DNA of 64,000 nt from Podarcis melisellensis (lineage: Eukaryota), in NCBI GenBank assembly GCA_964234715.1, contig OZ174276.1; one strand, given 5' to 3'. Of this stretch, positions 7,059 through 61,210 are shown one piece after another (position 1 is the first letter of the stretch; each line of letters begins with the position of its first letter). The translations under genes and the position numbers were made by a program. The notes below the pieces were generated by a model. It was given only the letters and a program-made list of their open reading frames with translations. It was not told the origin of the DNA and ran no database searches.

Positions 7059-7189
7059 NNNNNNNNNNNNNNNNNNNNNNNNNNNNNNNNNNNNNNNNNN
7101 NNNNNNNNNNNNNNNNNNNNNNNNNNNNNNNNNNNNNNNNNNNNNNNNNNNNNNNNNNNNNNNNNNNNNNNNNNNNNNNNNNNNNNNNN
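7059..7189. other. Assembly gap (N run)
   Basis: 131 N. Confidence 1.
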
Positions 7190-9589
7190 ATAGATATATA
7201 CACACAGAGTGACTTACTAAACTGAAATTTAAAATATCTGTTTTCTTAGTAACTTTATATTGCTTTAGTTATTGACTTCATCCTACTATGATTCCGAAGC
7301 AGCTTGTCTGAAGTGCTGTTTGATGCTTCTATTCTCTCCCTCACGCGCACATTCCATCATTCTGCTTTCTTTATCAGACATACTCCCTTTGGGACTTCTT
7401 CAAATCTGCTATTCTGTGTCTGCATATAAATGGATATTTTTTTTTTACAGTAAGGAGTTTAGGAACTCACATGGTCGCATTGTCCATTTCAGTAAGCGAG
7501 AGGGGTGGCTGTAGGGAGAGCAAATCCAAAATTGTGCGTCCTCTGCACGCTGGAAAAGGATGCAGATTTGTTTGGCTTTGTTCTTAAAATACCTTTAAAT
7601 GCTAGCAGCGAGATACTAAATATTTTAAACTCGGAGTTCCCGTTGACTTCAAGGATGTGCACATAAGGATGTCTCCTCATTGTGACTCGTATCGTAGGTA
7701 ACGTGGCAAGAAGGCTGCTGATTACAACAAAAATAAAGCAACGCTAATTGATAATGTGGGACTGAAAGGAAAGGACAAGTATATTCCGTGTTTATTTTAT
7801 TTTTTTAAATACAAACAGAGGCCGTCTTTTTTGAGGTGGAGTCCTGTTTACCAATTTCCTCTGCCATGCAGGGCAAACGAATGAAAAAAAAGCTCTCCTG
7901 TGCCTTCTGCGCCACGCAGAAATCCCAAAACAAACAAATAAACAGGACTGGAAGTTCAAAACGGGGAAGAACTGCAGATAGCGCTGCAAATGCACATCTG
8001 GCATTAGTCTGGGAAGAGCCACACAAGCGCGCGCGCACGCTGTATAGATTAGGCGGCTTTGGAAACTGTCACTGGGAAATCTGTTCATTTTCTCTAATGG
8101 ACTAGGAGAAGGATTGTTGTTATATTCCTCGCCCATCCCACAACAATATCCTTGCTAAACAGCACGCACGAACGCCGGGTGTCAAGACAATATAAATGAT
8201 TGGGTTTGTGTTTTTTTGTTCATATGCGTTGCGGCACTGCCTCCTCAGCTAAGTAACAACTGTATTCGCTACCGCTATGGAGGAGGGCCATAGACCCAGG
8301 CGAAATTTATAGCGGCCCCGGCGTTGCGGTTATGATTTTGCTATGATATTACTTGGGAACAAAGTCCCATTGATTCCCTTGGAAATCTACTCTCTTGCAA
8401 AGGCGTGGGGTTTTTTTTGTTTGGTTTGTTGCTTTCCCTCCCTTACTCCCCCCTTACTCCCACGTCGCTGCCAATACGAGAAGAAAATGGGAAGGGGGGG
8501 GGGGTTGAAGCTACTTGGATAGCCTAAAATTATGGGTTGACCTCGATGGAGATTTAATTCTCATGCTCCCCTCCACCATCTTGCGGTGGTAAGGAAGCGA
8601 ACCTGCTCTTCTCCTCCGTCTCAGCCAAAACAAGGACTCCAGCCATTTTTCATAAGTTTCCTCCGAGAGGAAGACTTATCTTTCACCATAATGAGAACAG
8701 CTTTGCCACTGAGAGGGAGGGGCGCTTTCTTTTGGAGGGTGGGTGGGAAATAAATAAATAAAGCCTCTTTATTCACCCACTAACCCCCCACTTTCGCGCC
8801 TCTCTCTCTCTCTCTCTCTAAATTTCCTCCCTTCCCCTCTCTTCCACCACCCTCCAACCCTTATCCCACTCGCGATATCACCTTATCGGTTCAATCTATG
8901 TAAAGACCACCCACCCACTCCCCTCTTTAACCTCCGAATCCCTGGCAGATCTCCTGTGCGCAATTAGGCCCGTTCTGGGACCTCCGACGGACAACCTGTG
9001 ATATGAGAATGTCTATAATCCAGCCCTCCACAGTAGACAGGCTGCTCAAGACTTTGCAGGATCTCCCCTCATTTCCGCTCTTATTAATTTCAGGCGCTCT
9101 GATCTATCCAGCCCATCCCTCCCTCCTCCTCCTTTATTTAAAGATTATACGATTAAGACAAGAAAATCTAAACCCTCCTTTCCCTTATCCCCTCCCCCCA
9201 CCCAGTCTCCCCCTCTCCTTACCGAGCGAACTTCATTGTTTTCTGGAGGAAACCGTAATGTTGAGACATTAAACCCTAATTGGGCTTTTCTTTATGACGT
9301 TTAATTTCCTCCATCGCAGACGTGTTTGCATCTTGCTGAAAGAGGAGTTGTTTGAAGTCTGCAATCCCGGAGGGGGGGGGGAGAGGGAGGGGAAAAAAAA
9401 CTTTCCAAGCAGCAGTCGTCATGCGGACTTCTGGTCTCATTCCCACATAGTCTCACCCTCCATGCACCCCCACAGCCTTCCTCTTGATCGTTGCATTCAG
9501 ATAGCCCCCCCTCCCTCAAAATAAGAATGGTGATGTAAAAGAGAGGGGGAAATGGGCCGGGGGGGTGTTTAAAAAGAGAGACAGAGACC

Positions 9590-9690
9590 CATATGTTTAC
9601 TCGGGTAAGAAATGCGATGGCCATTTAGCTCTGTTGTGACAAATCCATGAAAATGGAGGACCGCCGTATACCATATAAGGTAGGATGCTA
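9590..9690 (+). ncRNA. HOTAIR: HOTAIR-homologous conserved block 1 (3' part of a HOTAIR internal exon plus splice donor)
   Basis: ATGTTTAC..AGAAATGCGATGGCC..AAATGGAGGACCGCCGTATACCATATAAG|GTAGG versus recalled human ATGTTTAC..AGAAATGCCACGGCC..AAATGGAGGACCGGCGCCTTCCTTATAAG|gt. Syntenic and antisense to the Hox genes. Transcription is not shown by the sequence. Confidence 0.7.
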
Positions 9691-12599
9691 ACTTGACCTT
9701 CACTTTGTAATGGCGGCCCCCGCCCACCCAGACAGACTGTTGTAAACAGAAGTCATCCGACCAAAAAAAAAAAAAAAAGATTAGCACCGGGCAGACAAGG
9801 TCTCGCAGAATTGCTAACACATTTGCTGGTTTTTAAGCTGCGGCAAACGAGGTACAATATTTTCTGAACTACAGTAGGGGACGGAGTGGGGGTGGGGATG
9901 GAGGAGGAGGAGGAGGAAGAAGAAGGGGCGGGCCTCATCATTGGAGATCAACAAAGGTCTTCCCAGATCTTTAGTTTGCTGTATTAAAGGGTTGTTAAGA
10001 GGGGGTCTCCCCAGATCGGGCTTCGTATAGATTACAGCGTCCGGAGCTGTTGTTGAATGTGGCCTTGAGGTAGAGGGTGGCTGGGTGACTGGGTGGGGGC
10101 GGCCGGCGCTTCTCTTAATGAATTTATCTGTCCAGATTCTTAAAAAAAACAGCAATTCATTACGATGACGACGAGGACGGACGATTTACGAATTCACTCT
10201 AATTTTAATGCAGGAGATCATTCAAAAAATCGCCTCTGCTTTTATTTAAATCTATAGAATGTTTTGTTTACGTCAATCTGAAATGGAAAGTGTTAAAAGA
10301 AAGCGCGAGTAGCCTTCCTTCTTTCCTTTTTAAGGAAGGCAACGAGAGTCTCCTGACTCGCCATTTCCGCAGCAGCCAAATCACAACAGTGGCAAAAAGT
10401 TTGTCAGAGTGCTGAAAATAGGTTTAGTTTTCCTTTTCGAAATGCTGTGTTTGGGCCCAGGCAAACGATCGGTTCGTGATTGTCAGTGCGGGGAGTTCAG
10501 CCTTGTATGGTGGTGGCGGCTGTTTGCGGGGAGGGGGGGAGGAATAGAGACTGTACCTGATCAAACAATATAATTTATTGAACATACCTTTTTGCTTGTC
10601 AGTTACCTAGACATAATGGAGCGCTATCGATAGACGGGTCATGGATCCCGATCCACTGCACGTATTAGGCGATCGTCTCCATTTAAGTCATTTTATCCCC
10701 CTTTAAACCAACCGAGTAATAATGGCCACCAAGTTATTGCATCTTTCACAAACTCAGAACTTTTAAAATCAGCGCCGCATACTTTACTGATGCAACGCCG
10801 CCAGTCGTTTATATAGATGAGTAACTAGGAAAGGCACGACCAAAGACCAATTAATTTCAATGAGGAAGTGCTTAATCGACAACAAGGGGACTTACAAGCG
10901 CTCCACCTTGACTGGATCCTGCCCTTTCAGGAATACAGAGGAGGCAGTAAACATAGGTATTGTTAGGCTGATATTGTATCATTACATTCTGACGCAAATA
11001 ACTGGCATAGCAAGCAGAGCATGTTTGCCTGTTTGCATGTTTATTTGTGTGTGTGTGCGCGCGCGGAGAAACACAACATTCTAATCAGACTCATCATAAG
11101 CATGAAAAAGGGTGAACGTGTTCAAGTCTCTGTCGGCAAACACAGCCACCTATTGCCCGGTCTTGGCGGGCTAATCGTCGCCTTCATTTCAAAGCTGGAC
11201 TCTCCCTTTGATTTTAGCAGCAGCTACTGGGAGGTGTGTTTTGTGGGTGTTTCAAGCCCTTCATTTGGTGGCCCTACGTGTACCTCTCAGACGGAGTACA
11301 TGCGTTCTCCTTTGTCATTTACATCCAGAGCTCTGGATTTCTTCCTTTGAATATTTATTCCTTTATTCCTATGGCTGTTTTGTATGGCCCCTCACTGGCC
11401 CAAAATTTGCACTACCACGCAAACGCATGCAGAATATGTGCAAATATTTTGCCCCCACTCAGTCAGGAATTCTCGAGGGACACAAGGGATGCCGGCAACA
11501 GGACTTTGCTGATTGTGCAACCTTTAAAGGACAATTCGGTGGAACTCCCTCTTCAACTGCAGTAAATGGCAGAGCTCTCGCAGATTTTGATGGTGAGTCT
11601 AGGAAGGCGCTAGCTGTTCGTTATTAGGACTCCCTCCTACTCCACCCTATTTCATATAATAATACTAATGATTCTTTCTTTCTCAAAACCTCACACAGCC
11701 TCATAATAGATTAATAGTTCTTCATCACAATGAGATGAATTTTCACATGCCCTTTAATTATCATCTCATCTCCAGCGAACACTGGTTTTGGAGAAGGTAA
11801 AGGCGGGTATTGGATACAACTACAAAGATGGTTCCCCCCCCCCCCTTGGGAAGATTAATGTTGGCTGTGATTCTTAAAAGATCTTCAGATATAGCCCAGG
11901 CTGCTTGCATAACAACAATCAACTACCACAAGGCCTTCATCACATCACTTTATTAAAGGGGGAAAGTATTTTTAGCCTGTCTGTTTCAGACCCAGCCAAC
12001 CATAAACAAAGATTCTTAAATGCAAATACGGTCTTATTTGGGTTCCAGAAAGGCAAATGAGATTTCTAACTTTTGGGCATGCCATAAAAGGAGAGTTTTT
12101 AAAGCCACCTTCACTCTTAATTATGGGAAAGCCCTAGCGTTTCCAAATATAGGAAAACGACTCAGTCCAAGTTAAGCGTCAACTTGCTTCTGAGTAAAAC
12201 TGGATAGGATCCGGCTGCAAAAATTATCGCTTTCAAGTGGGAGAGATTTAAACACCTGCTTTATAGTTATAGGCAGACACATTTACTTGGGAATAAGTAA
12301 ATAGGGGTAGGATGAGGGCGCACATCTCTTTGAACTCTATAGAACTCCATAGCCCTTAACTCAAGCTAGAATGTGTGCACATTTCCTTTCAAATTAAGGT
12401 TATTGGGAGATACACGTAGACATAACCTCATGTTGTTGTTAGTTTGTTGGTTGATAAGTGAGTGGTTTTCTTTAACTGATTCATCAACTCTGCTGGTTAG
12501 CATAATCTCGCAGAAACAAAGCCTGGCTGTAAGAAATTCTAAGCAAACTCTTATGGCTCCTGCAAGGAATACAAATGTATCCATCTTTGTATCTTTCCT

Positions 12600-12780
12600 A
12601 TCCTTTTCATCTTTATTATCACTCTTGTTAACAACACCAGCGAGGCTTGATACATATATCTCGTTTAAATGCAGTCAACCATGAAGCCACTGCAGTTGGT
12701 TGCTACAGACATATTAATTAATTTATTCTCTCAACAGTAAAATATTGCTGTGTCTCCTTGCTACCAACCAAGTCATATAA
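12600..12780 (+). ncRNA. HOTAIR: HOTAIR-homologous conserved block 2 (part of the human terminal exon)
   Basis: CATCTTTATTATCACTCTTGTTAACAACACCAGCGAG and TAATTAATTTATTCTCTCAACAGTAAAATATTGCTGTGTCT versus recalled human CATCTTTATGATGAGGCTTGTTAACAAGACCAGAGAG and TAATTAATTGATTCCTTTGGACTGTAAAATATGGCGGCGTCT. Same order and strand as block 1. Confidence 0.65.
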
Positions 12781-13214
12781 AAATCAGGGTTTATTTTTTT
12801 ACCCCCTCTGCAGTTCATTAGGCTTTACCTATAAGTTTCCATTTGAAATGATTTGCTTTAAAACTAATTACTCGTATTCTATTTCATTTCCCAATCCCGG
12901 AGTGTAAGATGGATTCAAAGGTGGCGTGGGTGGCATATGTTGGTAAACATTGCTAATTATTCCCACTCTGTCTTGATTGTGTATTTATGAACCCACCCAT
13001 ATAAAAGGGGGAGAAAATACTCAGTAAAAGGTGTGCTGGCATATTGATGATAATGGCACATGTTACTTAAAAGAGTGCAGTGTCGCTAGGGACAGTGTAA
13101 GATGATAATGTATCAGCCGAGATTTTGTTTAGCAGATTTCCACTTTGAGAATAAAATATTGGACTCACTCGCAGCACATTCCAATACACACCTACTCAGA
13201 AGTGAGCCTCTTTG

Positions 13215-13342
13215 AGGTTAGGCAACGTGGTGCCCTCCAGGTGTGGTGGACTGCCAAAGCCTATCAGTCCAAGGCAGCATGTCCAATGGTCAGGGATGAT
13301 GGGAGTTGGAGTCCAACATCTGCAGAACATCACAGTAGACTA
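13215..13342. mobile_element. Degraded short hAT-type MITE common in lizards
   Basis: Fold-back pattern GCCCTCCAGGTGTGGTGGACT...CCAATGGTCAGGGATGATGGGAGTTGGAGTCCAACATCTG; termini eroded. Confidence 0.6.
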
Positions 13343-13540
13343 TTCATGGTGTATATAGGACTGCAGTCTCAGGGTGAGGAAGAAGAGAATGAGGACCAGA
13401 ATTGCACCCTGGGGTGACAACAGAAGGCCCAAGCATAGGCTAGCCCTGCACAATGTCTACAGTGCGCCAGGTGTATTCAGAAAAGACTGTTTTGGGGCCA
13501 TGGCTTCTAGGGAATTTCAGGGACCTCTGTTTGCCTAATC

Positions 13541-14338: not shown

Positions 14339-16504
14339 GTTTGTATAACTAACTCTACTACTCCCACATTGCACCTATATGATAGCGTACCTAGGGTGGC
14401 ATTAATATAGGGTGCCATATTAATATTTACATAATGTTATGTAAGTATTCATTTTTAAGCTTCCCGTTTAAAAAGGTTGGAGAGATTAATAATGAGGGCT
14501 ATAATATTTCCTCCGGAACACGCCTGGCCCCAATCTTCTGACCGCCCTTTGCTATTCGGTGTCCCTAAAGAAGATGCATTCGTAACAAAGCCTACCCTTT
14601 TTCGAAAATAGACACAGTTTGTACGTGGCAAATGGCGCCTAGTGTCATACACGAGCGAATGACCCTATATAATGGAATTTCATTTTTTAAATGCCCTTCA
14701 CGACGAGATTTGTTATGTTATCTTTTTTGCTTTCTCTTCAGTCTGCGGGGTCTTTCCAAAATACCAGAAGAGCATGGGAATGTTTGCAAAACATTTTTGG
14801 CTGCAGCCGTTGACGGGATGAAAGCCAAGGCAAGGGAAGAGTCAGACAGATAGCTTTGCCGCAGATCCTCCGTGAAGTCCAAGACCAAGGCTTGCTGACC
14901 CCCAAGCGAGGGACCATTTGTCAAGAGGGAAGACATCCCGTGCGCCCGGGAAACCGCGCGAAACAGTATTTCAATTGTCTTATATATGCTTCAAAATAGC
15001 ACCGATTATGAATTCTCAGTAAGTAGATATGTGGCAGTCAGTGCAGAGGCTAAGCTTACCGAAATATAAGATAGATACAGGGATTAGAGAGAGAGACAGA
15101 CAGATGGATAAGACGGACAGACAGAAAGCGGAGGCAGGCCAACCAGTATTCCACATTTGCACATTAGCACGAGACAATGGCGTTTTAATAATTTGAAATA
15201 AAACAAAAATTAATCACTGGCTTGCACTTTTTTTAAAAAAAAAATAATCCACGCTAACATTTCCCTAATTTGGTAACTTGAAGGAAATGTGTCAAATACT
15301 TGTTAGCATTGTTATCCGGATCATAAAAGCTGCCTTCTTACTTGGGAACAAGTTCCATTGGAATAACTATGCATAATGCGACATGCTGCTGCTGTTGGTG
15401 GTGGTTTAGTAAGAAGGAAAAGGACATCCTGTTAAACCGATCCTGAATTTTGGGTGGTAGTTGTGGTGGTGATGCGTGTGGGGCTTACCTGATACTGGCG
15501 AGCAAGCAAAACACATCGTTGGGGTTTTCTTGGGACTAGCATGCATCGCTTCAGATCTATAATATATAATTACTCTTTGCACCATCTTTCTGCGCTGAAC
15601 AATGACTATTATGTGCATATGTTCAGCCCCAGAGGGTAAATTCTCTATTTTCCCCCGATAACACATAAAACATTTGCTCACAACCCTTTCGGTATAGAGA
15701 ACACCTATAGTAAAAAAATACTAATAATGATAAAGATAAAGCATTACTTGTTTTCGGATCAAGCCTATGCGCTTTTGCATATTTCCCATAATTTTGGAAT
15801 AATTTGCACTGTTGAAATACAACTTAACTGGGTGTGTGCCTGTTGTTGGGGTTTCCCCCCCTTATTCTCTTGAAGGCAGAATTATTCCTTGCAATTCAGG
15901 AGATGGGGTTATACTTTCCGCTTCTTAATGAATTCATTTTAAAGCCATAGCTATGAAATACACCCCTATATAAAAAAAGCAGCAGCAGAAGCAGCAAGCA
16001 AGCTGAGGAACAATACGCACTTTTACTGCGAGCAACAATTTGTCCTAGCCACTCACTGGTAATAAATAAGTTTTATCTATTTGGGTGAGTGTTTAAGCAT
16101 CTTTGGAACCAAGCATTCCCTCTTCAAGGTGAACCGATCCACAATTTTCTACACAATTTATGCCTCTATATACAATCCAGGCTTGTTGGACATGATCCAG
16201 AACCCTATTCACTTCTGTGGAGCCCTTAACAGTCCTCATATGACAACCAACGTTCCGTGCACACCTCCAGTAAAAGAGGCAGAAATGATATTTGTGTGGG
16301 TACTTCTTTCGAAGAAATGAGAGTGAAAAAAGAAAAGAGAAACCTTGTGAGTGAAATCTATATCCTTTTGAAGCCAAGGGCAAGTCTCCAATTGATTTTA
16401 ATGGTGGTGAATGACAGCTCTTGAAAGCACGGTGGGGAGTGATTCAGTGAGATGGGCACCCCTAAACAGATGCACTTGAAAGAAAGTCCTACAGAGATAC
16501 ACCA

Positions 16505-16800: not shown

Positions 16801-19800
16801 CTTAAGGGCCGCAGCGAGGTTTGTACCCTCAGCGAAACTTGCTTCCAGATAAACACCTTAGGCTCGAATTATTGCAAGGAAAAGAACGCACATAGAGTTT
16901 TCTGTGCTAGGGGAATCAAGAGTTACCTGTCCATACCTCGAGGCATCCATAGCCGCCATTATTAGCATTTAAATGAATTTGGGCCGGATTCTTAAGGGGA
17001 ACAGTGTGAATATTAGAGGAATCGGTGAATGTTTAAAGGATCGGGGCCCCGTTGTCTTGCAACTTCCCATAGATCTCCATTACTCTTGATGTATCATAGA
17101 AATAGTTTCCCTTGAAATGCATATTACATCCTAAAAGCTTCTGGGCTCATATCCAGCCCAGGTACTGAACTATATCGAGTTCCAAATGTAGAATGTTCAC
17201 CTACAAAGGCACTATAGCCCTATGAACAAAGAAGCAACGTTTTATATCATTCGTGTCATTAAATTTTAACTCATAGCCCGCTGTTATAATTTCTTCCTGG
17301 ACTTTATGAAGGATTTCCTATTAATTTCGCGGGCGCGCAAACACACACACAGCTCCACCCAGTATTTTAAATGCCTGCGATGGGGTCAGAGCTGAATTCA
17401 ATCGGATGCTGTTGCCGACAAATAAGAGGAGGCTGACCAAACCTTGTATGTTCACCTTTTAAATAATATTATGTACACACAATATACAAATCAATGCATC
17501 CCCCATGATCCGTCTCTGCTACCGAGACGTGTGCGAGTGTCGTTTGGGCACAATTGCACACAACAAGCCAAGCAGCCTCTCTGGCGCGTCAATATTGTGT
17601 ATGTTCAGAAGGGGGCGTCGCGGGTTGGGGGGAGGAGAGAGGCGTTAGCAAAGTGCATCACCAATCTCTAGCAATTGCCTTCGCGCAATCTCTTTCTTTC
17701 CTTAATGCACCTATACCATAAGAACACAGGACCTCTTTGCAAGGAAGTGCCTTCTTCTAATAACAGGACTAAAGAAAGCGGAGAGAATTGACTGGCATAA
17801 GCTCACACCTCTATCCTATCCCCACTTATTAAGAGCCGAAGGAGCAAAGGATTCTACATGGGGATGAGCAGTTCTTGATCCGCTTTTTGGAGATGGTCTC
17901 TCCCTCCTCCTCTTCACAATCCACTTATTGATCTTTTAAAAGGTTTTTGGCGTGCGCGCGCCTGCCGGTGTGTGTATTAATGCATTGCTCCAGCCGCCAC
18001 TAAATTTTATGGTTGAACCGAAGACCTGAAAGGTGGATAAAGTCATTACATGTAAATCTTCCTTTCCAGAGGAAGATTCCACCTCTCTCTCTCCCCCTAT
18101 ACATACATACATACACACACACCCATCCCCTACCACTCATACAACCTACACAATTCATGAAATTTAAATTGACTCTGTGGAATCGCTGCTATAAAGGCAC
18201 CTGGCTGGATATTCAGAAGAGAGAATAAAACACGAAGCCAACGGGAGGAATTAAATATGGGCTTATTGAAGAAGATCGAATCCAAGGCTCGTGAGGGTTT
18301 TTCTGCTTTGTTTGGGAGGTGGGGTATTTGTTTTGTTTTTGTTTATATTGCAAGAGTTGCAGTTTTAAATAAAAGTGTCTCTTAATTTAAAAAACAACAA
18401 CAAAACATCCATGTTATTTTAAATAAATAAATATTTCCCCCCTTTAATCTAGGGGAAGTTTGTCTTGGCCTCAGTTGCTCCTGAAAGGGGACAAAAAGAA
18501 ATAGACTGGTGACACTTCTCTTTCCCAGAGAACAAAATATCAGTAATGATTCCGTTTATAAGCAAGGCCATCAGGAACCCCCCCCCAAAAAACCCCCCTT
18601 ATATTCGCATTAAACGTTAACATCCCAGATTCATTTACTCTCTTATCTTCTTGGATTTTTTTTTTTAATTATAGGTATCATTGTGCTCCGAGGCACCCCT
18701 TACTTTACAACCTATTTTATATATCCACTTAATTATTTTTTTAAGGGAAACATGATCTATATACCTCCAAATGTTTCATTGGCTTATTTCTGTGTGCGCG
18801 CTACTCTTTTACTAAGCTCTCTCGGTCCTCCAACAGTCGATAGTAAATCACCAACCAGAGGTTTGAAACATTTTATTTATTATCAGAAATCACATAATAA
18901 TACATTCAATTTATTATTATTATTATCATTATTATTATCATCATCATTATTGTGAAACAACTTTTTACATGACTATATAAAGCCGGGGGAACGTGCTATG
19001 GACAGACATTTGCATAGGCCCTACATATAATAGCTTGAGGTAAGAAACATTACATATGGACTATATTGCCAACGATGCATATTTAACAACAGCAGGAAAC
19101 TAGACTAGAGAATAACAAGCGAAGGACCGAGCCACAGACACCGGGAACTAACACAAGACGAACAGAATTCACACGGAATAATAATACTTCAATGCAATCT
19201 GAACGAGAATATTGCATATATTTCAACTTCTTCATTTTCAAATTTTAAATTATCACTCCCCCTCCCTTTAAAAAAATCGTTGAAGTGGCAACTGAGAATC
19301 GCCTGCTATGTGCAGTTACACACCAAGGAGACCATTCTCAGGTCTCAAGATTCTTGCTGGTGGGTTGTGTATTGTATTTCTAAGCGTAAAACTCCTTCAC
19401 TGTAGATAGAAATCGCTCTCGGCGCGTAAAATATTAACATCAAGACAGTCTTTCTCTCTGTCTGTCGCCTGCCACAATTGTAACCGAACGCTGCGTTTTA
19501 TAACATTGCCCCGTAAACGCTCAAAACCCTGGTAAGCCAGCCCCGCCAACCCCTTCCAAAACGCAACCTTTTGCCAGCGAGTGACATGTCACATCTTTTC
19601 AAGAGGAAGCGATGGTAGCAAACCAAGTACAATACTGATAAGTCTGATTCCTCGAACATGTTCCTCCTTTACCGCACAGACACAAGTCTTCCCTTCTAAA
19701 TTTATGCAACACACCCCATGACATTTCAGTTGGCTGAAAGTCGTTATTTTGACCGAAAATGCTGCTTCTTTCCTATTAATATTATTGAGAAAACTGAGAC

Positions 19801-21745
19801 AAAATGGATGATGACAGCGCTACCGGCTTAAGCGGTTTCATCGGACTGCTCTGTACAAAGGAGGCAAAGCACAGGCTGGAGACAACGGGAATGGCGTTAG
19901 ACTGAAGCCTACAGTTTTCTGTTCTTCAAGGTACCTTTTTGGAGAAATAGGTAGGCGTCCTCCACATTTAGCCGCCTAAGAACACAGACACCCACATGTG
20001 CTCTGTTCATTGCACATAACTGGGGGGGGGGGAAATATATGGATGTCTCTCACACACGCCCCCCCCCCAATCTATTGCACATAATTGTGACTGGGTACCT
20101 ATTGGATTCAAAGCAACTCACAGGCAGAGGATGCCTCTTCTTTTACAAAGGTTAGAGTTTGTAAAGGGGAGACTTGATATACCAAAAGGGTGATACTGGG
20201 ATGGGGGACCTCTCAAAACTCTGGATATTGGGGTGGGGGCAGGGGGAAGCGGAATAAAGACAAGGAACGATGGCACAGCCATGGCAAGCAGACCTAAATA
20301 TAAGGCTTGCAAGGGTGGAGAATGAGCGGGGCGGGGGACACACAGAGGCATTTTAAGGACTAGACGGCATCCTTTGCAGCTCGTAAAGGCGAAGCATTCC
20401 TGCCACCGGCCATGACCATGAACGCCGGGACGGGGAGCCACGTGGTGACAATTGAGCCTGGCCCAGGAAAACGTTGCCTTTGTCATAAAATTAATCCCCT
20501 CCGATATAAAAACGAATGAAGCAAAGCCTATCGTAGCAAAACTCGCCGCTTAGACCGTCTTGACCCCCCTCACCCTACTTTGCTGTTGTGGCTCATTTGT
20601 CTCATCGTCCAGTTCCCGGCCGCTCCAACCCACCCACCCCCCGCCCCGCGACATTTTTTTTTTTTTAAAGTATGCAATTAGGAAACCAGCAGAACAGAAC
20701 GAGAATAGGTTCCTGGACCCCGATGAAATAAGTACCAGGAATATCAAGGGAACTTATTCCCAAGTCAATCATTTAACGGGCTGACAGGGAGAGAGATTCC
20801 TGTCGGGTTACTTCCACGGTGGAACAACCCTTGTCTGCCGCCTCCCCGCGCGCCTTCCTCCCCGCATTGAGTGGGAATTTAAGGAATGGGAGTTTAAGCA
20901 ATGCCCAAGCCTGTCAGAGCTATTAGGAAATCTAATGGTTGTCTGAGGCAGGAGCTGACCGGCAAGGCAACCCGCTCTGCGGTTCCCCTTCCTGCTCTGG
21001 GACTGTTCTACACCGGGGAAAGTACAAAGGGGAACCGGCGGTGGGGGTGGGAGTTAGACGGATGAATGAATGCGTTGGGCAGAAATTACCGTATATCCCC
21101 CAAAGCAGAATGCGTGCGTTTGTGGTTGTAGTGTGTGTGTGTTTGGGGGGGGGGATAAGGCGACACCCCCCATAAATGTTCAGAGTCATCAGCTGCTGCC
21201 TATGAAAAATCAGGAATGAAAATAAGTGTGTGTGTATGTGTGTGATAGAGAGAACATACACACAGACACACACACACACACGGGAGAGAAAGAGAGAGAG
21301 AATTTTTGATTCTTAAGGGAGAACTGCCGTGATTAAAAATAAAAATCTAACTAAATATGAGGAAGATTAAAAGAGGGGAGGGGTGGTGGAGGTAGAGGAG
21401 AAGCATCTCATTCATTTCGAAAATAGCCACCATTAAAGAAAACGTTTTTAATGCCAGAAGAGAACTCTCTATCTTAGAAGGAGGGAAGCTATTAATAGCT
21501 TAATTAGCTCCAAGGGGCTGCCACTATAGTTAATGTATAAAAGGGGGCATCCCCCCACCGCCCCTCGCCACCATCTTGATCATCAATAAACACAGTAGCA
21601 TAATAAGCGGGACGAAGTCTCCTTCAGTGGAGCTATTATCAAAACACAATTTGAAATTATTGTTAGCGTTCTGTAATGCTTATGGGGTTGTGGAGAGAGT
21701 AGACCCATGCAGGCGGCGCGGCTGGACTAGGAACGCGAGAGGTAC

Positions 21746-23017: not shown

Positions 23018-23256
23018 TTAAAAGAAGGAAAGGGCTTGCTCTCTCAGGAGGAGTCTTTTCTTTTTCATACGCCGGTTCTGGAACCAGATCTTCACCTGCT
23101 GGTCACTCAGGTTTAACCGATCTGAAAGCTCCCTCCTTCTTTGGCGAGTAATGAATTCATTGACCATAAACTCCCCTTCCAGCTCCGCTAGCTGTAGTTT
23201 AGAATAGGGTTTTCGCTTTTTCCGGGACCTTGTGTGCATCGGGTACCAGGGAGCAC
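23018..23256 (-). CDS. HOXC12: Homeobox protein Hox-C12, coding exon 2 (homeodomain)
   Basis: Acceptor TTCTTAG|[81 protein letters not shown]. Joined CDS 804 nt = 267 aa; intron 23257-24899. Confidence 0.97.
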
Positions 23257-23624
23257 CTAAGAACAGCGTGATGGAAAGGAGATTTAAACACATGGAGGGG
23301 AAGAGAGATAGAGAAAGAAAGAAACGAAAAGAAAAAGGGGAGCGGGTAACGCTTTAAAAAAGGGAATGCTTCACCCCTCCATTTTTGACCCACACACGGC
23401 TCGTTATTTAATAATATGAGATACGCGTTTCTAATGCCCAATCCAGTAAAGATGCTTTAACTTCGAGAGAAAGGAGGATGGGTGGGAAGAAGACCTTTAC
23501 ATCTGCGTTTTAGATTCCAAGCTCCTGGGCTCCTGTGTCACCACGCATACCACATAAGTCATACATTGCAGGTTTTCGGAACTATTAGGATTTAAGGAGA
23601 GACCTTAAAAAAAAACTAGTTAGG

Positions 23625-23626
<2 letters not shown>

Positions 23627-23700
<74 letters not shown>
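23627..23700. repeat. Compound (CT)n(CA)n microsatellite in the HOXC12 intron
   Basis: Visible directly; a (GA)n tract is also at 24513-24541. Confidence 0.95.
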
Positions 23701-24510
23701 CGCTGGACATTTATAACCGATGGGAACTTTTGCTTATTTATCTTACAGAAAAATAAGCAACCTAAGCTAGCTCTTACAGATCCCGAACAGCCAAAAAGTA
23801 CCAGCACCACCAGCTAGAATGAATGCTAGAGTGTCTCTGTGGTTACCGTGTAAGACCTCAAGGCACCAGATGGGCTGGCATGCCTTAGGTATCCGGTTTA
23901 GGAGATGTCAGATCTGAAGTTTAAGGACGAGGAAGCCTCTGTCTTCAAGAGTCCCAAAGCCAGATTCTGCAGAGGGAATGAAACATCTCCAGCAGCCAGG
24001 GACGCTTCACAGGAGACGAGAACCAACTGGTCCTTGTTCCTGGAAGTGTTTGCTCACCAGAGGATCAGGCACATAACGGGAAGCTTTATGAGAGAGAGTT
24101 TGTTTGGGTTGGGTTTGTTTTTGTTTTTTTTTGTATTTTGGCAAATGGTGTCTCAGCATTGCGTGGAGATATATACTTTTCTTTATAGAACCTTCCCGGT
24201 TTTGTATGGGGATGGGCTGGGATGGCGGGAAGGCGAGAATTGGGTTTTGAAAACCAGGGTGTTTGTTTCTTTTTTTTAATGCAGAGCTTGGCACCATCCT
24301 TAAAATGGGTTTTTACCCAGGGTGGCTAATCTCACCGGGGACAGAAAACCTGTGGAAGTTTAGCCCTCCCAGCCCTGCAGTCAGACTTCTACCAAATCTT
24401 TCAAATACAATCACACACCCTTCTACATTTCATTTCTGTTGCAAAAGCTTCACGCACCCAGTGGCAAATTGTCCTGTATGTAGCGTGCCTGTTCAGATTC
24501 GGGAGGAGGG

Positions 24511-24541
<31 letters not shown>

Positions 24542-24654
24542 GCATGAAAATCTGTCTATCTGGGCCATCGCGATCTCTTTTATGGGATATTTACATGTTT
24601 ATAGGCTTTTCTTTTAAAAGAAGCAGCACCTAATAAAGCACGAGGCATTTGAGT

Positions 24655-24670
24655 GCTACCCCTAGTGGCC
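24655..24670 (-). promoter_or_regulatory. Candidate CTCF site in the HOXC12 intron
   Basis: GGCCACTAGGGGTAGC matches 13/16 of consensus GGCCACCAGGGGGCGC. Confidence 0.45.
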
Positions 24671-24899
24671 TCGGCACAAATAGACATGCTTCAGTCCCAG
24701 CTGCTAATTTCATGGAATTTATAACAGCAAGAGTCGCGAGCAGACTTTTTCAAGCGAGAGAGCGCGCGCGCGCGTAAGAGAGAGAAATAGAGAGAGAGAG
24801 AGAACACAAAATAAGAATAAAATAAAGAAGAGGCATTGCATAAATTCGCTTTTCTTATTCGTATATATATATATATATTTCCTGGTCGCACGTTCTTAC

Positions 24900-25464
24900 C
24901 CCCAGCGGAAAGATTGCTTCCTTGGTTGATAGGGGAAACCATTGTGGACGGCTCGCTGGTGGCGCCCTTATTGCCTTCATTGAGTAAGGAGGAGCTGGAG
25001 TCTGACTCCAAAGACTGACAAGAGGGGGGATCGTGGGGCACCGCCTCGGGAGCCGGATAGTCAAATTTGCCGAAACTGCCGCTCATTCCATTGGGGATCC
25101 CAGATTCGAGAGGCATCAAGGCATTGTCCCTAACCCTCTCTTCCCTTTTGAGGGGAGCGTTCTCCGAGCACGCCTCCCTATAGTAGCACTTGCTCTCTTC
25201 CACTCTAGCTAGGTCGCAGGCTCGGCTGAAGGAAGGGTTAATAGACACGGGGCTGCTGAGATAGGGCTGGGGGTATCCGTTGCAGGGTTCTGAGGATGCC
25301 CAGGGCAGAGAACAGACATTGTCCCTTCTTGGGTAGGAGAGAGACGGCAAGCCGGGCAGCTGTCCTCCGGAGGCTCGGAAATTGGGGAAATAGAAGGTGT
25401 CTCCCGTATGGATGTTCACCAACGGTCCCACAAACCCAGGATTAAGGAGATTATGTTCGCCCAT
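24900..25464 (-). CDS. HOXC12: Homeobox protein Hox-C12, coding exon 1
   Basis: ATG at 25464 (GAAATGG) gives [55 protein letters not shown]..., the HOXC12 N-terminus. Phase-1 donor GGGG|GTAAGA at 24900/24899; exon 565 nt. Confidence 0.97.
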
Positions 25465-37965: not shown

Positions 37966-40606
37966 GTATGTTACATTAAACAGCATCTGGTAAACTAACT
38001 GAACAATGTCTGTGCCAGACATTATGGAGAGAACAGAGAGAAAAATAAGGAAAAGGAGTTTGTATGCGTGTGGGGAAAAGGATATAAATTAGAGGAAGAG
38101 GGGGAAATGTGAAGAGGAAAGACCGAGGGAAAGAAAGAGCGGGAGGTGCTGGAACTCGGATGGGCTGGCTGGCTGGCTGAGCAAAGTATTAATATATTAG
38201 CATAGGGCCGGGGGGGGGGGGAACTGCTACTATTCCAGGCGATATTTGTCCAGGACAGATATAAAGAAGGAGACCAAGTCACGGACCAGGCATTTCGCAA
38301 GCACAGCACCCTTAACGTTAGCTCCAAAATTAGTAAAAATTGGAGACAGAATCTAACCTTCAGCTCTTCACTCCCCTTCTAAGCATCCGGTCAATTTTAA
38401 CCTGTCGTTTTAAAAGACAGATCCTCTGATAGCCTAGGCGACCTCATTAATTATGCTAGCTTGTAGGATCCGGGTAGGGGACTTGGTGAGGGGAAACAGC
38501 CGTGTGTGTGTGAGTGCGCGCGTCTGTGTTGTTCCAGAGATGCTCCGCACTGATTGATCTATGCAACACAAGGACCATCTGCAAGCTTGAGGGACCTTGA
38601 ACTAGCCTTTCCACATCCTTTGTCGCTTATGGTAGAGGCATTAAATAAAATAAAAGGGCCCAGCGGCTTTTTTGACGGTACCCAAACTGTGGAGAAATGT
38701 TACCTACCTACTCCTGGTCCAGAACCGGCTGTGGAATCAATGAATTCTCATCACCCTTAATGCATTCAGTCTTCTCCTTAATAGCCCCTTATGCTAAGAC
38801 TGTCTATGCCAATTCTTCATGATTAACTGTAATCACTTGCGCACCAAGTCTTTCCCTTCCCATGGCTTCTTGATCTAAAGATGCAGGCTTAAGACTCGAT
38901 ACGAAGTAAGAGTGGTTTGCGGAATAATAATATAAACACTGAAAAAGAGGGGATCTCTATTGAAGCAAAGCGAAAATCTCTCCAGTTACCCCAGCCGGTC
39001 TGTTCCATAACAGATATAAAATAAAGAAACAGCCTGAACTGCTTTTGAAGACACACTTCTCTGTGCGATTGCTCTTCCTTTGTTGCTAAGAAGTGTCTAT
39101 ATAAGCAACGTTTACTGGGAATCCTATCAAGGCCCAATGATAGGAAAAGAAGACAAAATTGTGTTTCACACTACTGCGAGCGCGCTGTCTCTCACGCACC
39201 TCTCAATGTTTGGGAATTGGTGTATGGCGGCTTAATAATATTTTCAGGGCTATACAAAAATGGGATCAGAATAAATAAGGTAATGGGGCGGGTTGGGGGG
39301 GTGTGGGAAGAGAAGAGAAGTTCATTTACAACGTCTTCCACCTTCCTCCCGAGCAATAGTAACGCACGGAGCAGGTCCTTCCAACCTCAACTACATTTTA
39401 GCCAGGCGGGTGAAAGCAACTGAGATGGGGATAGTCATCTCATGCTAGGAATCCCATGGACCTCTCTCCCCCACTCGCCAAACCCTCCCTTCAGCTTCCG
39501 CAAAGAAGTCTCAATGCCTTCTTTTTTTTAAAAAAAGCGCGGGGTGGGGACTTTCCCCCTGCCATCGACCCTTCCAAGGTCTGACACCAATATGTGGCTG
39601 CAACACAGTTAAGATCTGGATAGGCCTTCTCTCCCACACTCGCTACACTCTGATTCCTCTTCCCATGGAAAAGGGGAAAACCCATCATGCAACGCTCTGC
39701 GCAGGCATTGTTGGCAAGCCCTGTCTTATCCGATGGGGTATCCCCTCTCCAGTATTCCTAAGATAAATGTGTGTGTGTGTTCTCCTCCTAACCCCACCCC
39801 CTTATTTATTTATTTCCCCGGTTACTTTATCTTAATCTCTTCGCTCCAATCCATCCATTCGAATCATTAAGAGGGGCCTGTTTATTGATTACAGGGTAGG
39901 GACCCCAAGAGCAAAGGAGACGTCCGCTGGTCTTTCATCTTTCTCCCTCTCCCTCTCGCTCCCTCCCTCCCTGTTCTAAGTGGTAAGGCAATAAGATGAG
40001 CCCGGAGCACTCCCAGCTTTCAGGGTTACTCGCAGGCTGTCACTCATTCCAGATTCCTAACCAGAGGCAAAAGCAGCGCCTTATTTCTCGTTCTCTCCCC
40101 ACTCGTCTTACAAGGTTCATTTGTAAGATTCATGTCACTTGACAGCTACTTCTGTAATTGCAATATGATTTACTGTACCTTTCCGAAAAGCCCAGCCTTT
40201 CTGAGTAAAGAGAAAGAGAGGGGGAGAGAGGGAGAGAGATGCTACCTCTTCCTATGTTCTGAAATTTAATTTAAAATATTCAAAGCGCGCGGGGGGGGGG
40301 GGGAAATCAAAGAAAAAGATAGAGATCCAGGTAAGGGAGCCAACGCAGCGAGGGAAGGAGGGGCACGCACGCACATACACAGACAGACACAGGAGTGCTG
40401 TTGCCAAACTGGCTGCGAAAGCACCCTGGAGCTCCAAGGTATGTATCTGGATATGAGAACCGGCTGCTTTGTTTCACCTTCTTCCCCATACGTGCCCATG
40501 CAAGCGTCCCAAAGCCTATTTTACCTGGGCGGTTAAAGATTATAGCATATGCACGCGATCATGCCGGAGCAAAAAAGCGCAGAAGTCGATCTCAAGAGCA
40601 CCCTAC

Positions 40607-41270
40607 CTGGGAAAGGTGATTTCCAGAGATGGGTAGACTGTGATTGCTCCTTCGAGCAATAGACCTGCCCGTCCCAACCATTAGAAAGAGCCCAGTGTTG
40701 GTATCCTTCCATGGGAAGCAGCGCGTCGTGTCTTGGTTCTGGGTGGCCACTGATACCTGGAACCACTGATACGTCCAAATAACCAGGAACCGCCTGGTAG
40801 GAGCTGGCAAAGCTCGGGTAAAAAGCAAACTCTTTGGCCCTTGAGGATAGTTCTTCGCTGGGGAGGGAGCCGCTGGGCTCGGGGTATTTTTCAGCTGGGT
40901 GGTACGAACAAGGCTTCTGTTGTAAGTTCACGTTGTGGGAATGGGACAATCGGCATCCGTAGTAGCTGCCTCCAAAAGGATAGCCATAGCCCAAGGTGGC
41001 GTTGGAGGAGGCTGGCGGCGCGGGGCACTGCCTGGCGGCATCTGGAGCAGGTATATCCGTGTAGACAGAACCCTGGTGAGTCCCAATGGTGCTGGAATGA
41101 CGACCCAATACCGGGTGACTGATTAAATCCCTGCAGTGGGTAGCTGGGCAGTTCCCACTTAGCCCTTCCATTGCTGGGATTTTATTCTGGTTATTTTCAT
41201 TCGGGTTCTCCTCATACACGTACATGAAGGTATCCGCCCAGCGTGGATGCAAGATCAGTGAAGTCGTCAT
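40607..41270 (-). CDS. HOXC13: Homeobox protein Hox-C13, coding exon 1
   Basis: Translation MTTSLILHPRWADTFMYVYE...YGYPFGGSYYGCRLSHSHNVNLQQKPCSYHP...LSSRAKEFAFYPSF...WALSNGWDGQVYCSKEQSQSTHLWKSPFP is the HOXC13 N-terminal domain. Phase-1 donor CCAG|GTAGGG at 40607/40606; exon 664 nt. Confidence 0.97.
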
Positions 41271-51812: not shown

Positions 51813-52273
51813 TGTTGTTGTTGTTGCTTAGTTGTTTAGTCGTGTCCGACTCTTCCTGACCCCATGGATCAGAGCACTCCAGGCATTCCTCTCTTCCACT
51901 GCCTCCAGCAGTTTGGTCAAACTCATGTTGGTAGCTTCCAGAACACTGTCCAACCATCTCGTCCTCTGTCGTCCCCTTCTCCTTGTGCCCTCAATCTTTC
52001 CCAGCATCAGGGTCTTTTCCAGGGAGTCTTCTCTTCTCATGAGGCGGCCAAAGTATTGGAGCCTCAGCTTCAGGATCTGTCCTTCCAGTGAGCACTCAGG
52101 GCTGATTTCCTTCAGAATGGAGAGGTTTGATCTTCTTGCAGTCCGTGTGACTCTCAAGAGTCTCCTCCAGCACCATAATTCAAAAGCACCAATTCTTCGG
52201 CGATCAGCCTTCTTTATGGTCCAGCTCTCACTTCCATACATCACTACTGGGAAAACCATAGCTTTAACTATAC
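51813..52273 (-). mobile_element. 5'-truncated RTE/Bov-B LINE 3' fragment
   Basis: Minus-strand ORF (VKA)MVFPVVMYGSESWTIKKADRRRIGAFELWCWRRLLRV...LKLRLQYFGRLMRREDSLEKTLMLGKIEGTRRRGRQRTRWLD is the C-terminal region of Bov-B ORF. Ends in a (CAA)n tail at 51813-51826. Confidence 0.93.
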
Positions 52274-58695: not shown

Positions 58696-58872
58696 AGGAA
58701 TAGGAAAATGCCTTTGATTGACCTACCTGACTTAGAAATGTCTACACTTCCTGGCAGTGACTCTCCAAGGGTTCAGGCAGGGAAGCTTTCCCATTTCTAT
58801 CTGGAGATGCAGGGTATTGAACCCTGGGCCTCCTGTGTGCAAAGCAGATGCTCTAACACTGAGCTCTGAACC
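58696..58872 (-). mobile_element. Degraded tRNA-headed squamate SINE (Squam2/Anolis SINE2-like)
   Basis: Minus strand AGCTCAGTGTTAGAGCATCTGCTTTGCACACAGGAGGCCCAGGGTTCAATACCCTGCATCTCCAG (A and B boxes), then ...CTGCCAGGAAGTGTAGACA... and TTCCTATTCCT end. Confidence 0.7.
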
Positions 58873-60991: not shown

Positions 60992-61210
60992 NNNNNNNNN
61001 NNNNNNNNNNNNNNNNNNNNNNNNNNNNNNNNNNNNNNNNNNNNNNNNNNNNNNNNNNNNNNNNNNNNNNNNNNNNNNNNNNNNNNNNNNNNNNNNNNNN
61101 NNNNNNNNNNNNNNNNNNNNNNNNNNNNNNNNNNNNNNNNNNNNNNNNNNNNNNNNNNNNNNNNNNNNNNNNNNNNNNNNNNNNNNNNNNNNNNNNNNNN
61201 NNNNNNNNNN
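60992..61210. other. Assembly gap (N run)
   Basis: 219 N flanked by GA-rich sequence. Confidence 1.

Follow-up and report, generated by a model that had tools for sequence, protein, structure and literature searches.

HOTAIR is a textbook long non-coding RNA (lncRNA) whose age and mode of action, as an RNA or as a DNA element, are disputed. The literature treats the transcript as restricted to mammals or as born in marsupials, and a first appearance in marsupials has also been proposed for the conserved domain of its exon 6 (He et al., 2011, PMC3103462). An internal exon, exon 4, is described as 'highly conserved in all species' (Yu et al., 2012, PMC3541083). Nepal et al. (2020, PMC7139118) described a 32-nt conserved non-coding element (CNE) that sits 8 nt from a splice site in mammals. 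Their CNE table comprises alligator, turtle, frog, coelacanth, gar and shark; it holds no squamate and no bird HoxC copy, and the missing bird copy is attributed to unassembled HoxC clusters. They describe the surrounding conserved sequence as 'much longer' and as coincident with enhancer RNA (eRNA), and the human region as a poised or active enhancer with eRNA. A preprint (10.1101/250621) states that non-teleost fish and tetrapods carry mappable flanks 'corresponding HOTAIR exons'. No squamate HOTAIR RNA is reported in the literature searched. Here, the corresponding locus is described in a 64,000-nt stretch (the window) of contig OZ174276.1 of the lacertid lizard Podarcis melisellensis (assembly GCA_964234715.1). 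Most likely, the locus is the core of an ancient HoxC enhancer, which serves additionally as an exon in mammals and possibly in all amniotes.

The window contains the lacertid HoxC cluster, in which HOXC13 and HOXC12 both lie on the minus strand according to their open reading frames (ORFs). The HOTAIR-sense letters are located on the plus strand, 13.3 kb past the HOXC12 stop, and are antisense to both genes. The conserved features are listed below, with a slash marking the exon-intron boundary.

9284-9367, no strand assigned: upstream conserved module with homeodomain-type motifs (TTTATGAC, TAATTT and TAATCC), outside the exon-homologous block.
9576-9679, plus strand: block homologous to an internal HOTAIR exon, probably exon 4, recognized by Rfam HOTAIR_3 and by alignment with turtle, Xenopus and whale.
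9671-9680, no strand assigned: CArG-like box, CC(A/T)6GG, formed by the last 9 exon-homologous bases and the G of the GT.
9680-9687, plus strand: donor-homologous GT with the 8-nt spacer, AAG/GTAGGATG, identical in lizard and turtle.
9688-9719, plus strand: 32-nt HOTAIR CNE of Nepal et al. (2020), with 30/32 identity to the published HoxC sequence.
9720-9891, no strand assigned: downstream conserved flank, intron-homologous, 84% identical to turtle and 91% identical to frog over the first 33 nt.
12557-13115, plus strand: colinear block homologous to the mammalian terminal exon domain, recognized by Rfam HOTAIR_2 and HOTAIR_1.

At the level of sequence, the homology of this locus to the HOTAIR exon, its donor and the CNE is secure. 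The CNE carries 2 mismatches to the published HoxC sequence, compared with 13 mismatches (19/32) at the next best site on both strands of the 64 kb, and it is 28/32 identical to the published HoxD paralogue, a complementary copy located between HoxD11 and HoxD12. It also contains a TGACCT half-site. In a permissive Rfam scan of 23 kb (positions 1-23000, 4227 families), HOTAIR_3 matched 9576-9678 with 33.1 bits (E value 8e-4); the model ends one base before the exon end. This score is below the gathering threshold of 80, and no match is obtained at the default Rfam threshold. The models of the upstream exons, HOTAIR_4 and HOTAIR_5, were not found in the permissive scans.

Loci of other species were obtained via HOXC12 proteins with 10-kb flanks, and the exon block was compared in turtle (Mauremys), Xenopus, right whale, rhea and a passerine. 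The 10-kb flank ends before the exon block in the snake, gecko, Varanus, alligator and echidna loci; it reaches the second block in gecko, Varanus and alligator, and no HOTAIR-homologous block was found in the snake or echidna flank. The lizard exon block is 80% identical to turtle (E value 4e-18) and 75% identical to Xenopus (E value 2e-9). It is present in a four-species alignment (A3), and the whale sequence scores 122 bits with HOTAIR_3 at the equivalent position and strand. The conserved core begins at TGTTTAC (9594-9600), which lies inside the Rfam exon match and not at its upstream end.

The Rfam HOTAIR matches of the lizard fall on the HoxC-sense (minus) strand. The same is true of the whale locus (18599-21138), in which all three models score above gathering, and the CNE and the HOTAIR RNA oligo that Nepal et al. 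(2020) give in HOTAIR sense match the plus strand of the lizard at 9688-9719. From these two observations, the Rfam models RF01904-RF01906 appear to be the reverse complement of HOTAIR RNA, and the lizard arrangement corresponds to the mammalian one. An inverted lizard locus was ruled out on the same grounds. The matches to HOTAIR_3, HOTAIR_2 and HOTAIR_1 are colinear, and their order and strand with respect to HOXC12 agree between lizard and right whale.

The initial annotation of this window, made from its letters, had proposed a HOTAIR-homologous exon antisense to HoxC whose end adjoins a deeply conserved element. Both proposals are borne out by the Rfam match, the turtle, frog and whale orthologues and the strand of the CNE; the alignment to HOTAIR is significant, and the element is the published 32-nt CNE. 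The two leading exon motifs, ATGTTTAC (9593-9600) and AGAAATGCGATGGCC (AGAAATGC...; 9608-9622), were correctly placed, but the gap between them is 7 nt and not 8. They are followed by AAATGGAGG... at 9651-9679 and the GT at 9680-9681. The motif at 9708-9717 that had been called YY1-like, TAATGGCGGC, is present and is identified as the 3' part of the CNE.

A chance resemblance of short motifs to human HOTAIR might be considered because donor-like motifs are frequent, with plus-strand sites of at least 7/9 to the consensus MAG/GTRAGT occurring once per 478 nt. Against this, the CNE stands far apart from the next best site, the two Rfam matches (E values 8e-4 and 1e-8) are colinear, and orthologues occur at the equivalent position in turtle, frog and whale. 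The CNE identity together with these orthologues refutes the explanation, the probability of which is negligible. Since the donor-like motif is common, the weight of the donor assignment rests on positional homology and not on the motif itself. The junction reads as follows in the six lineages compared.

Lizard: CCATATAAG/GTAGGATG, spacer before the CNE 8 nt.
Turtle: identical to the lizard, spacer 8 nt.
Whale: CCTTATAAG/GTACGATG (AAG/GTACGATG), spacer 8 nt.
Xenopus: CCATTTAAG/GCAGGATG (AAG/GCAGGATG), GC instead of GT, spacer 8 nt.
Rhea: GGAAG/GTAGGC, spacer 12 nt.
Passerine: homologous place without GT, spacer not applicable.

AAG/GT thus occurs in four amniote lineages (lizard, turtle, rhea and whale); Xenopus has GC in place of GT, and the passerine has lost the GT. 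About 45 nt spanning the junction are identical between lizard and turtle. The CNE starts 8 nt after the GT (9680 to 9688), with equal spacing in turtle, frog and whale. The earlier claim of an intact GT at the mammalian donor position is supported. The other proposed splice signals fared differently. Both are present in the lizard as follows.

9491-9500, plus strand: acceptor-like TTGCATTCAG; the turtle orthologue lacks the motif at this place.
9605-9606, plus strand: second donor-like GT, CGG/GTAAGA, found in the lizard only.

The letters of the acceptor ending at 9500 are present, but the signal is not conserved. The second donor scores 7/9, as does AAG/GTAGGA at 9680, but the corresponding dinucleotide is CC in turtle and whale and CT in frog. 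For the second block, the single candidate acceptor, at 11989, was rejected because the turtle lacks it. No conserved acceptor was therefore found for the exon block or at this candidate.

Conservation at this locus does not follow the exon edges. Between lizard and turtle, 80% of aligned columns are identical in both the upstream flank (9338-9575) and the exon block, rising to 84% in the downstream flank (9716-9891), and conservation spans approximately 550 nt over both 'exon' edges. The downstream flank, which is opened by a GC box (CCCGCCCACCC) at 9720, is at least as conserved in this comparison as the exon-homologous block. In frog and whale, the persisting core runs from TGTTTAC (9594-9600) through the CNE and the GC box. 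The upstream module at 9284-9367 shares 94.5% identity with rhea (55 nt), 79% with the passerine (183 nt) and 65% with whale (189 nt). Its TTTATGAC, TAATTT and TAATCC motifs are Hox/Cdx-like and Pitx/Otx-like by eye. Besides the exon core, lizard and whale share blocks at 9219-9389, 12593-12782 and 18887-19223. Further noncoding blocks conserved among sauropsids lie between HOXC12 and the second block (14758-15064, 15862-16220, 18600-19436 and 20345-20544), and whale and echidna also have the block at 18887-19223.

The exon-intron boundary itself coincides with the CArG-like box. This box reads CCATATAAGG in lizard and turtle, CCATTTAAGG in frog and CCTTATAAGG in whale, with only A/T-to-A/T changes. 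The T of the GT falls outside the box, and exactly that base differs in frog. In human embryonic stem cells, a narrow SRF chromatin immunoprecipitation (ChIP) peak at chr12:54359673-54359803 covers the CNE (54359707-54359739) and the exon end, and SP1 and TCF12 peaks overlap it (Nepal et al., 2020, Table S7, PMC7139118). The edge-independent conservation, the GC in frog and the CArG box at the boundary lean toward an older regulatory element. This is also the direction of the earlier inference that mammals exonised an older enhancer whose donor already existed.

The stretch from 9284 to 9891 is therefore best described, with a likelihood that we consider better than even, as the lacertid orthologue of a conserved regulatory module that occurs between HOXC12 and HOXC11 throughout tetrapods; the lizard letters would be kept mainly for regulation in cis. 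Its core extends on the plus strand from 9594 to approximately 9733 and comprises a forkhead-like TGTTTAC, the invariant AAATGGAGGAC, the CArG box, the 8-nt spacer, the CNE with its TGACCT half-site and, last, the GC box. The stretch up to the CArG box is, in mammals, the 3' portion of the internal HOTAIR exon, and the remainder is the start of the next intron. The letters would be kept chiefly for transcription factor binding, by SRF at the CArG box, SP/KLF proteins at the GC box, and factors of the forkhead and nuclear-receptor types, and the enhancer would act in cis on posterior HoxC genes. The GT would have been carried along in this constrained stretch and could have served as a donor at any time when an antisense transcript ran through it. 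It may thus be an old passenger of the module that mammals came to use as a donor.

No other piece of the interval is as well conserved as the second block. HOTAIR_2 matches 12597-12662 (47.5 bits, E values from 3e-9 to 1.4e-8 in the permissive scan) and HOTAIR_1 matches 12707-12744 (22.9 bits, E value 0.45). Both scores are below gathering (60 and 44, respectively), and the E values are significant for HOTAIR_2 and HOTAIR_3. The block is 77-79% identical to turtle, alligator and rhea over about 540-566 nt and 89% identical to Varanus over 689 nt, and a 200-nt core reaches 88% identity to birds, turtle and alligator. It was not found in the Xenopus locus. By sequence comparison, the second block extends at least across amniotes and the first at least across tetrapods. 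The amniote-wide distribution of the second block contradicts a marsupial origin of the exon-6 domain. A possible poly(A) signal, AATAAA, at approximately 13150 lies outside the conserved block, and a stretch resembling a short interspersed nuclear element (SINE) lies at 13180-13330, shortly downstream of the second block.

Several observations weigh against a module kept mainly for regulation in cis. The GT is retained in four amniote lineages. Two of the four lizard-whale blocks are exonic in mammals, and in the frog and whale comparisons the more distant flanks are less conserved than the exon-homologous block, a pattern that would suit an RNA-level role too. A host transcript over the HoxC CNE is recorded in coelacanth, and antisense transcription may be old (PMC7139118). 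The factor assignments proposed for the lizard depend on motifs and human ChIP data. Alternatively, lizards might make a spliced plus-strand HOTAIR orthologue in which the block functions as an exon; the antisense transcript would enter upstream of 9576, use the donor 9679/9680 and end in or beyond 12557-13115. Such an exon is possible but doubtful. It is consistent with a 7/9 donor exactly at the mammalian place and 8 nt before the CNE, with the GT kept in lizard, turtle, rhea and whale, with a colinear second block that matches the terminal exon domain and that squamates conserve better than any other block of the interval, and with an exon-homologous block that is the best-kept part in the lizard-frog and lizard-whale comparisons. 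However, neither the exon block nor position 11989 offers a conserved acceptor, the upstream exons went undetected with HOTAIR_4 and HOTAIR_5, and all Rfam scores are below gathering. Frog has GC and the passerine lacks a homologous GT. Conserved RNA structure was not found in the exon-homologous block (RNAalifold, -0.52 kcal/mol in the four-species alignment), and transcriptome-based surveys class HOTAIR as mammal-only. Six sequencing runs, from the same species and two close relatives, cover 9000-13500; their kind is unrecorded and none is listed as RNA. The stronger proposition, that the ancestor of amniotes already had a spliced antisense RNA using this donor and ending in the second block and that lizards still produce it, so that HOTAIR would not be a mammalian invention, appears unlikely. 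A spliced RNA and an enhancer are nevertheless compatible, and both hold in mammals.

Hox clusters yield long sense transcripts. The letters might accordingly serve a HoxC-sense transcript on the minus strand, such as a distal HOXC11 leader exon or a HOXC12 read-through, and HOXC11, which must be situated beyond the window, has the block on its upstream side. Nothing in the data indicates a minus-strand exon, however; the minus-strand ORF at 9301-9624 has no relatives in a protein-word search, and the human data consist of enhancer marks and HOTAIR-strand transcripts. A minus-strand exon was rejected on the basis of this ORF and the human transcripts, and we regard a sense transcript as a highly improbable reason for the conservation.

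The exon-like block is strongly diverged in both rhea and passerine, and the CNE is reduced to its first two thirds. The bird HoxC copy consists of approximately the first 21 nt with the GC box, in a very GC-rich setting (rhea locus L002, 21260-21310; passerine locus L003, 20640-20690).

The neighbouring genes set the frame for these comparisons.

23018-25464, minus strand: HOXC12 by its ORFs, with exon 1 at 24898-25464 and the end of the homeobox exon at 23018; it sets the cluster orientation.
40533-41270, minus strand: HOXC13 exon 1 by its ORF, with the homeobox near 37.6 kb.

HOXC12 exon 1 is 100% identical to the Hox-C12 entry of Zootoca vivipara, and the lacertid HOXC12 protein P0149 (Lacerta, Podarcis and Zootoca) covers both HOXC12 exons. 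In the Zootoca entry 'Hox-C12 isoform X2' (P0001), a short additional segment precedes the homeobox exon, which is then read in a different frame (window 23200-23293), so that the entry lacks the homeodomain. HOXC11 was not found within the 64-kb window, and only the HOXC12 flank of the interval is visible. Runs of N occupy 7059-7189 and 60992-61210. The former lies approximately 2.5 kb upstream of the exon-homologous block and by distance corresponds approximately to the human HOTAIR promoter region (Nepal Table S7). A fragment of an ORF resembling the reverse transcriptase of long interspersed nuclear elements is located at 51828-52259 on the minus strand. A tRNA-like match at 58810-58865 on the minus strand (36 bits in Rfam) is probably a SINE head, and a GT/CA microsatellite at 21221-21281 gives spurious weak matches to mir-297 and mir-466.

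Two exonic parts of mammalian HOTAIR, the best conserved ones, are thus much older than the stated age of the transcript. The donor GT predates mammals, and the exon-intron junction is at the same time a conserved CArG box beside the CNE. These observations support the idea that an enhancer already existed where the mammalian exon came to lie. If a spliced lizard RNA did exist, it would provide a reptile system in which the role of the RNA could be separated from that of the enhancer. Earlier publications already cover the CNE and its conserved flanks; new in this analysis are a squamate example, a comparison of the GT in six lineages, the CArG box across the junction and the shortened copies in birds.

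Compared with mammalian HOTAIR, the lizard locus has two homologous blocks in the same order and on the same strand, with an intact GT at the homologous junction. It differs in that the lizard matches fall below the Rfam gathering thresholds, the upstream exons are undetectable and any lizard RNA is putative; mammalian HOTAIR is dated to marsupials or mammals in the literature, whereas the DNA of both blocks is older. The lizard CNE agrees with the element of Nepal et al. in its sequence, its side of HOXC12, its orientation and its 8-nt distance from the donor-homologous GT, and it carries an 'A' at the position for which that paper describes this base as the non-mammalian state. The two accounts differ in the squamate instance presented here, in the state of the GT outside mammals and the junction CArG box, which the paper does not discuss, and in the shortened copies carried by rhea and passerine, where the paper lists no bird HoxC copy. 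With respect to known SRF sites, the junction box is a perfect CC(A/T)6GG match conserved from frog to whale, with a human SRF peak over the homologous site; in the lizard, it is a predicted SRF-binding site. The CArG box reported for MKL1/SRF at HOTAIR (PMC5796349) is a different site, located in the promoter.

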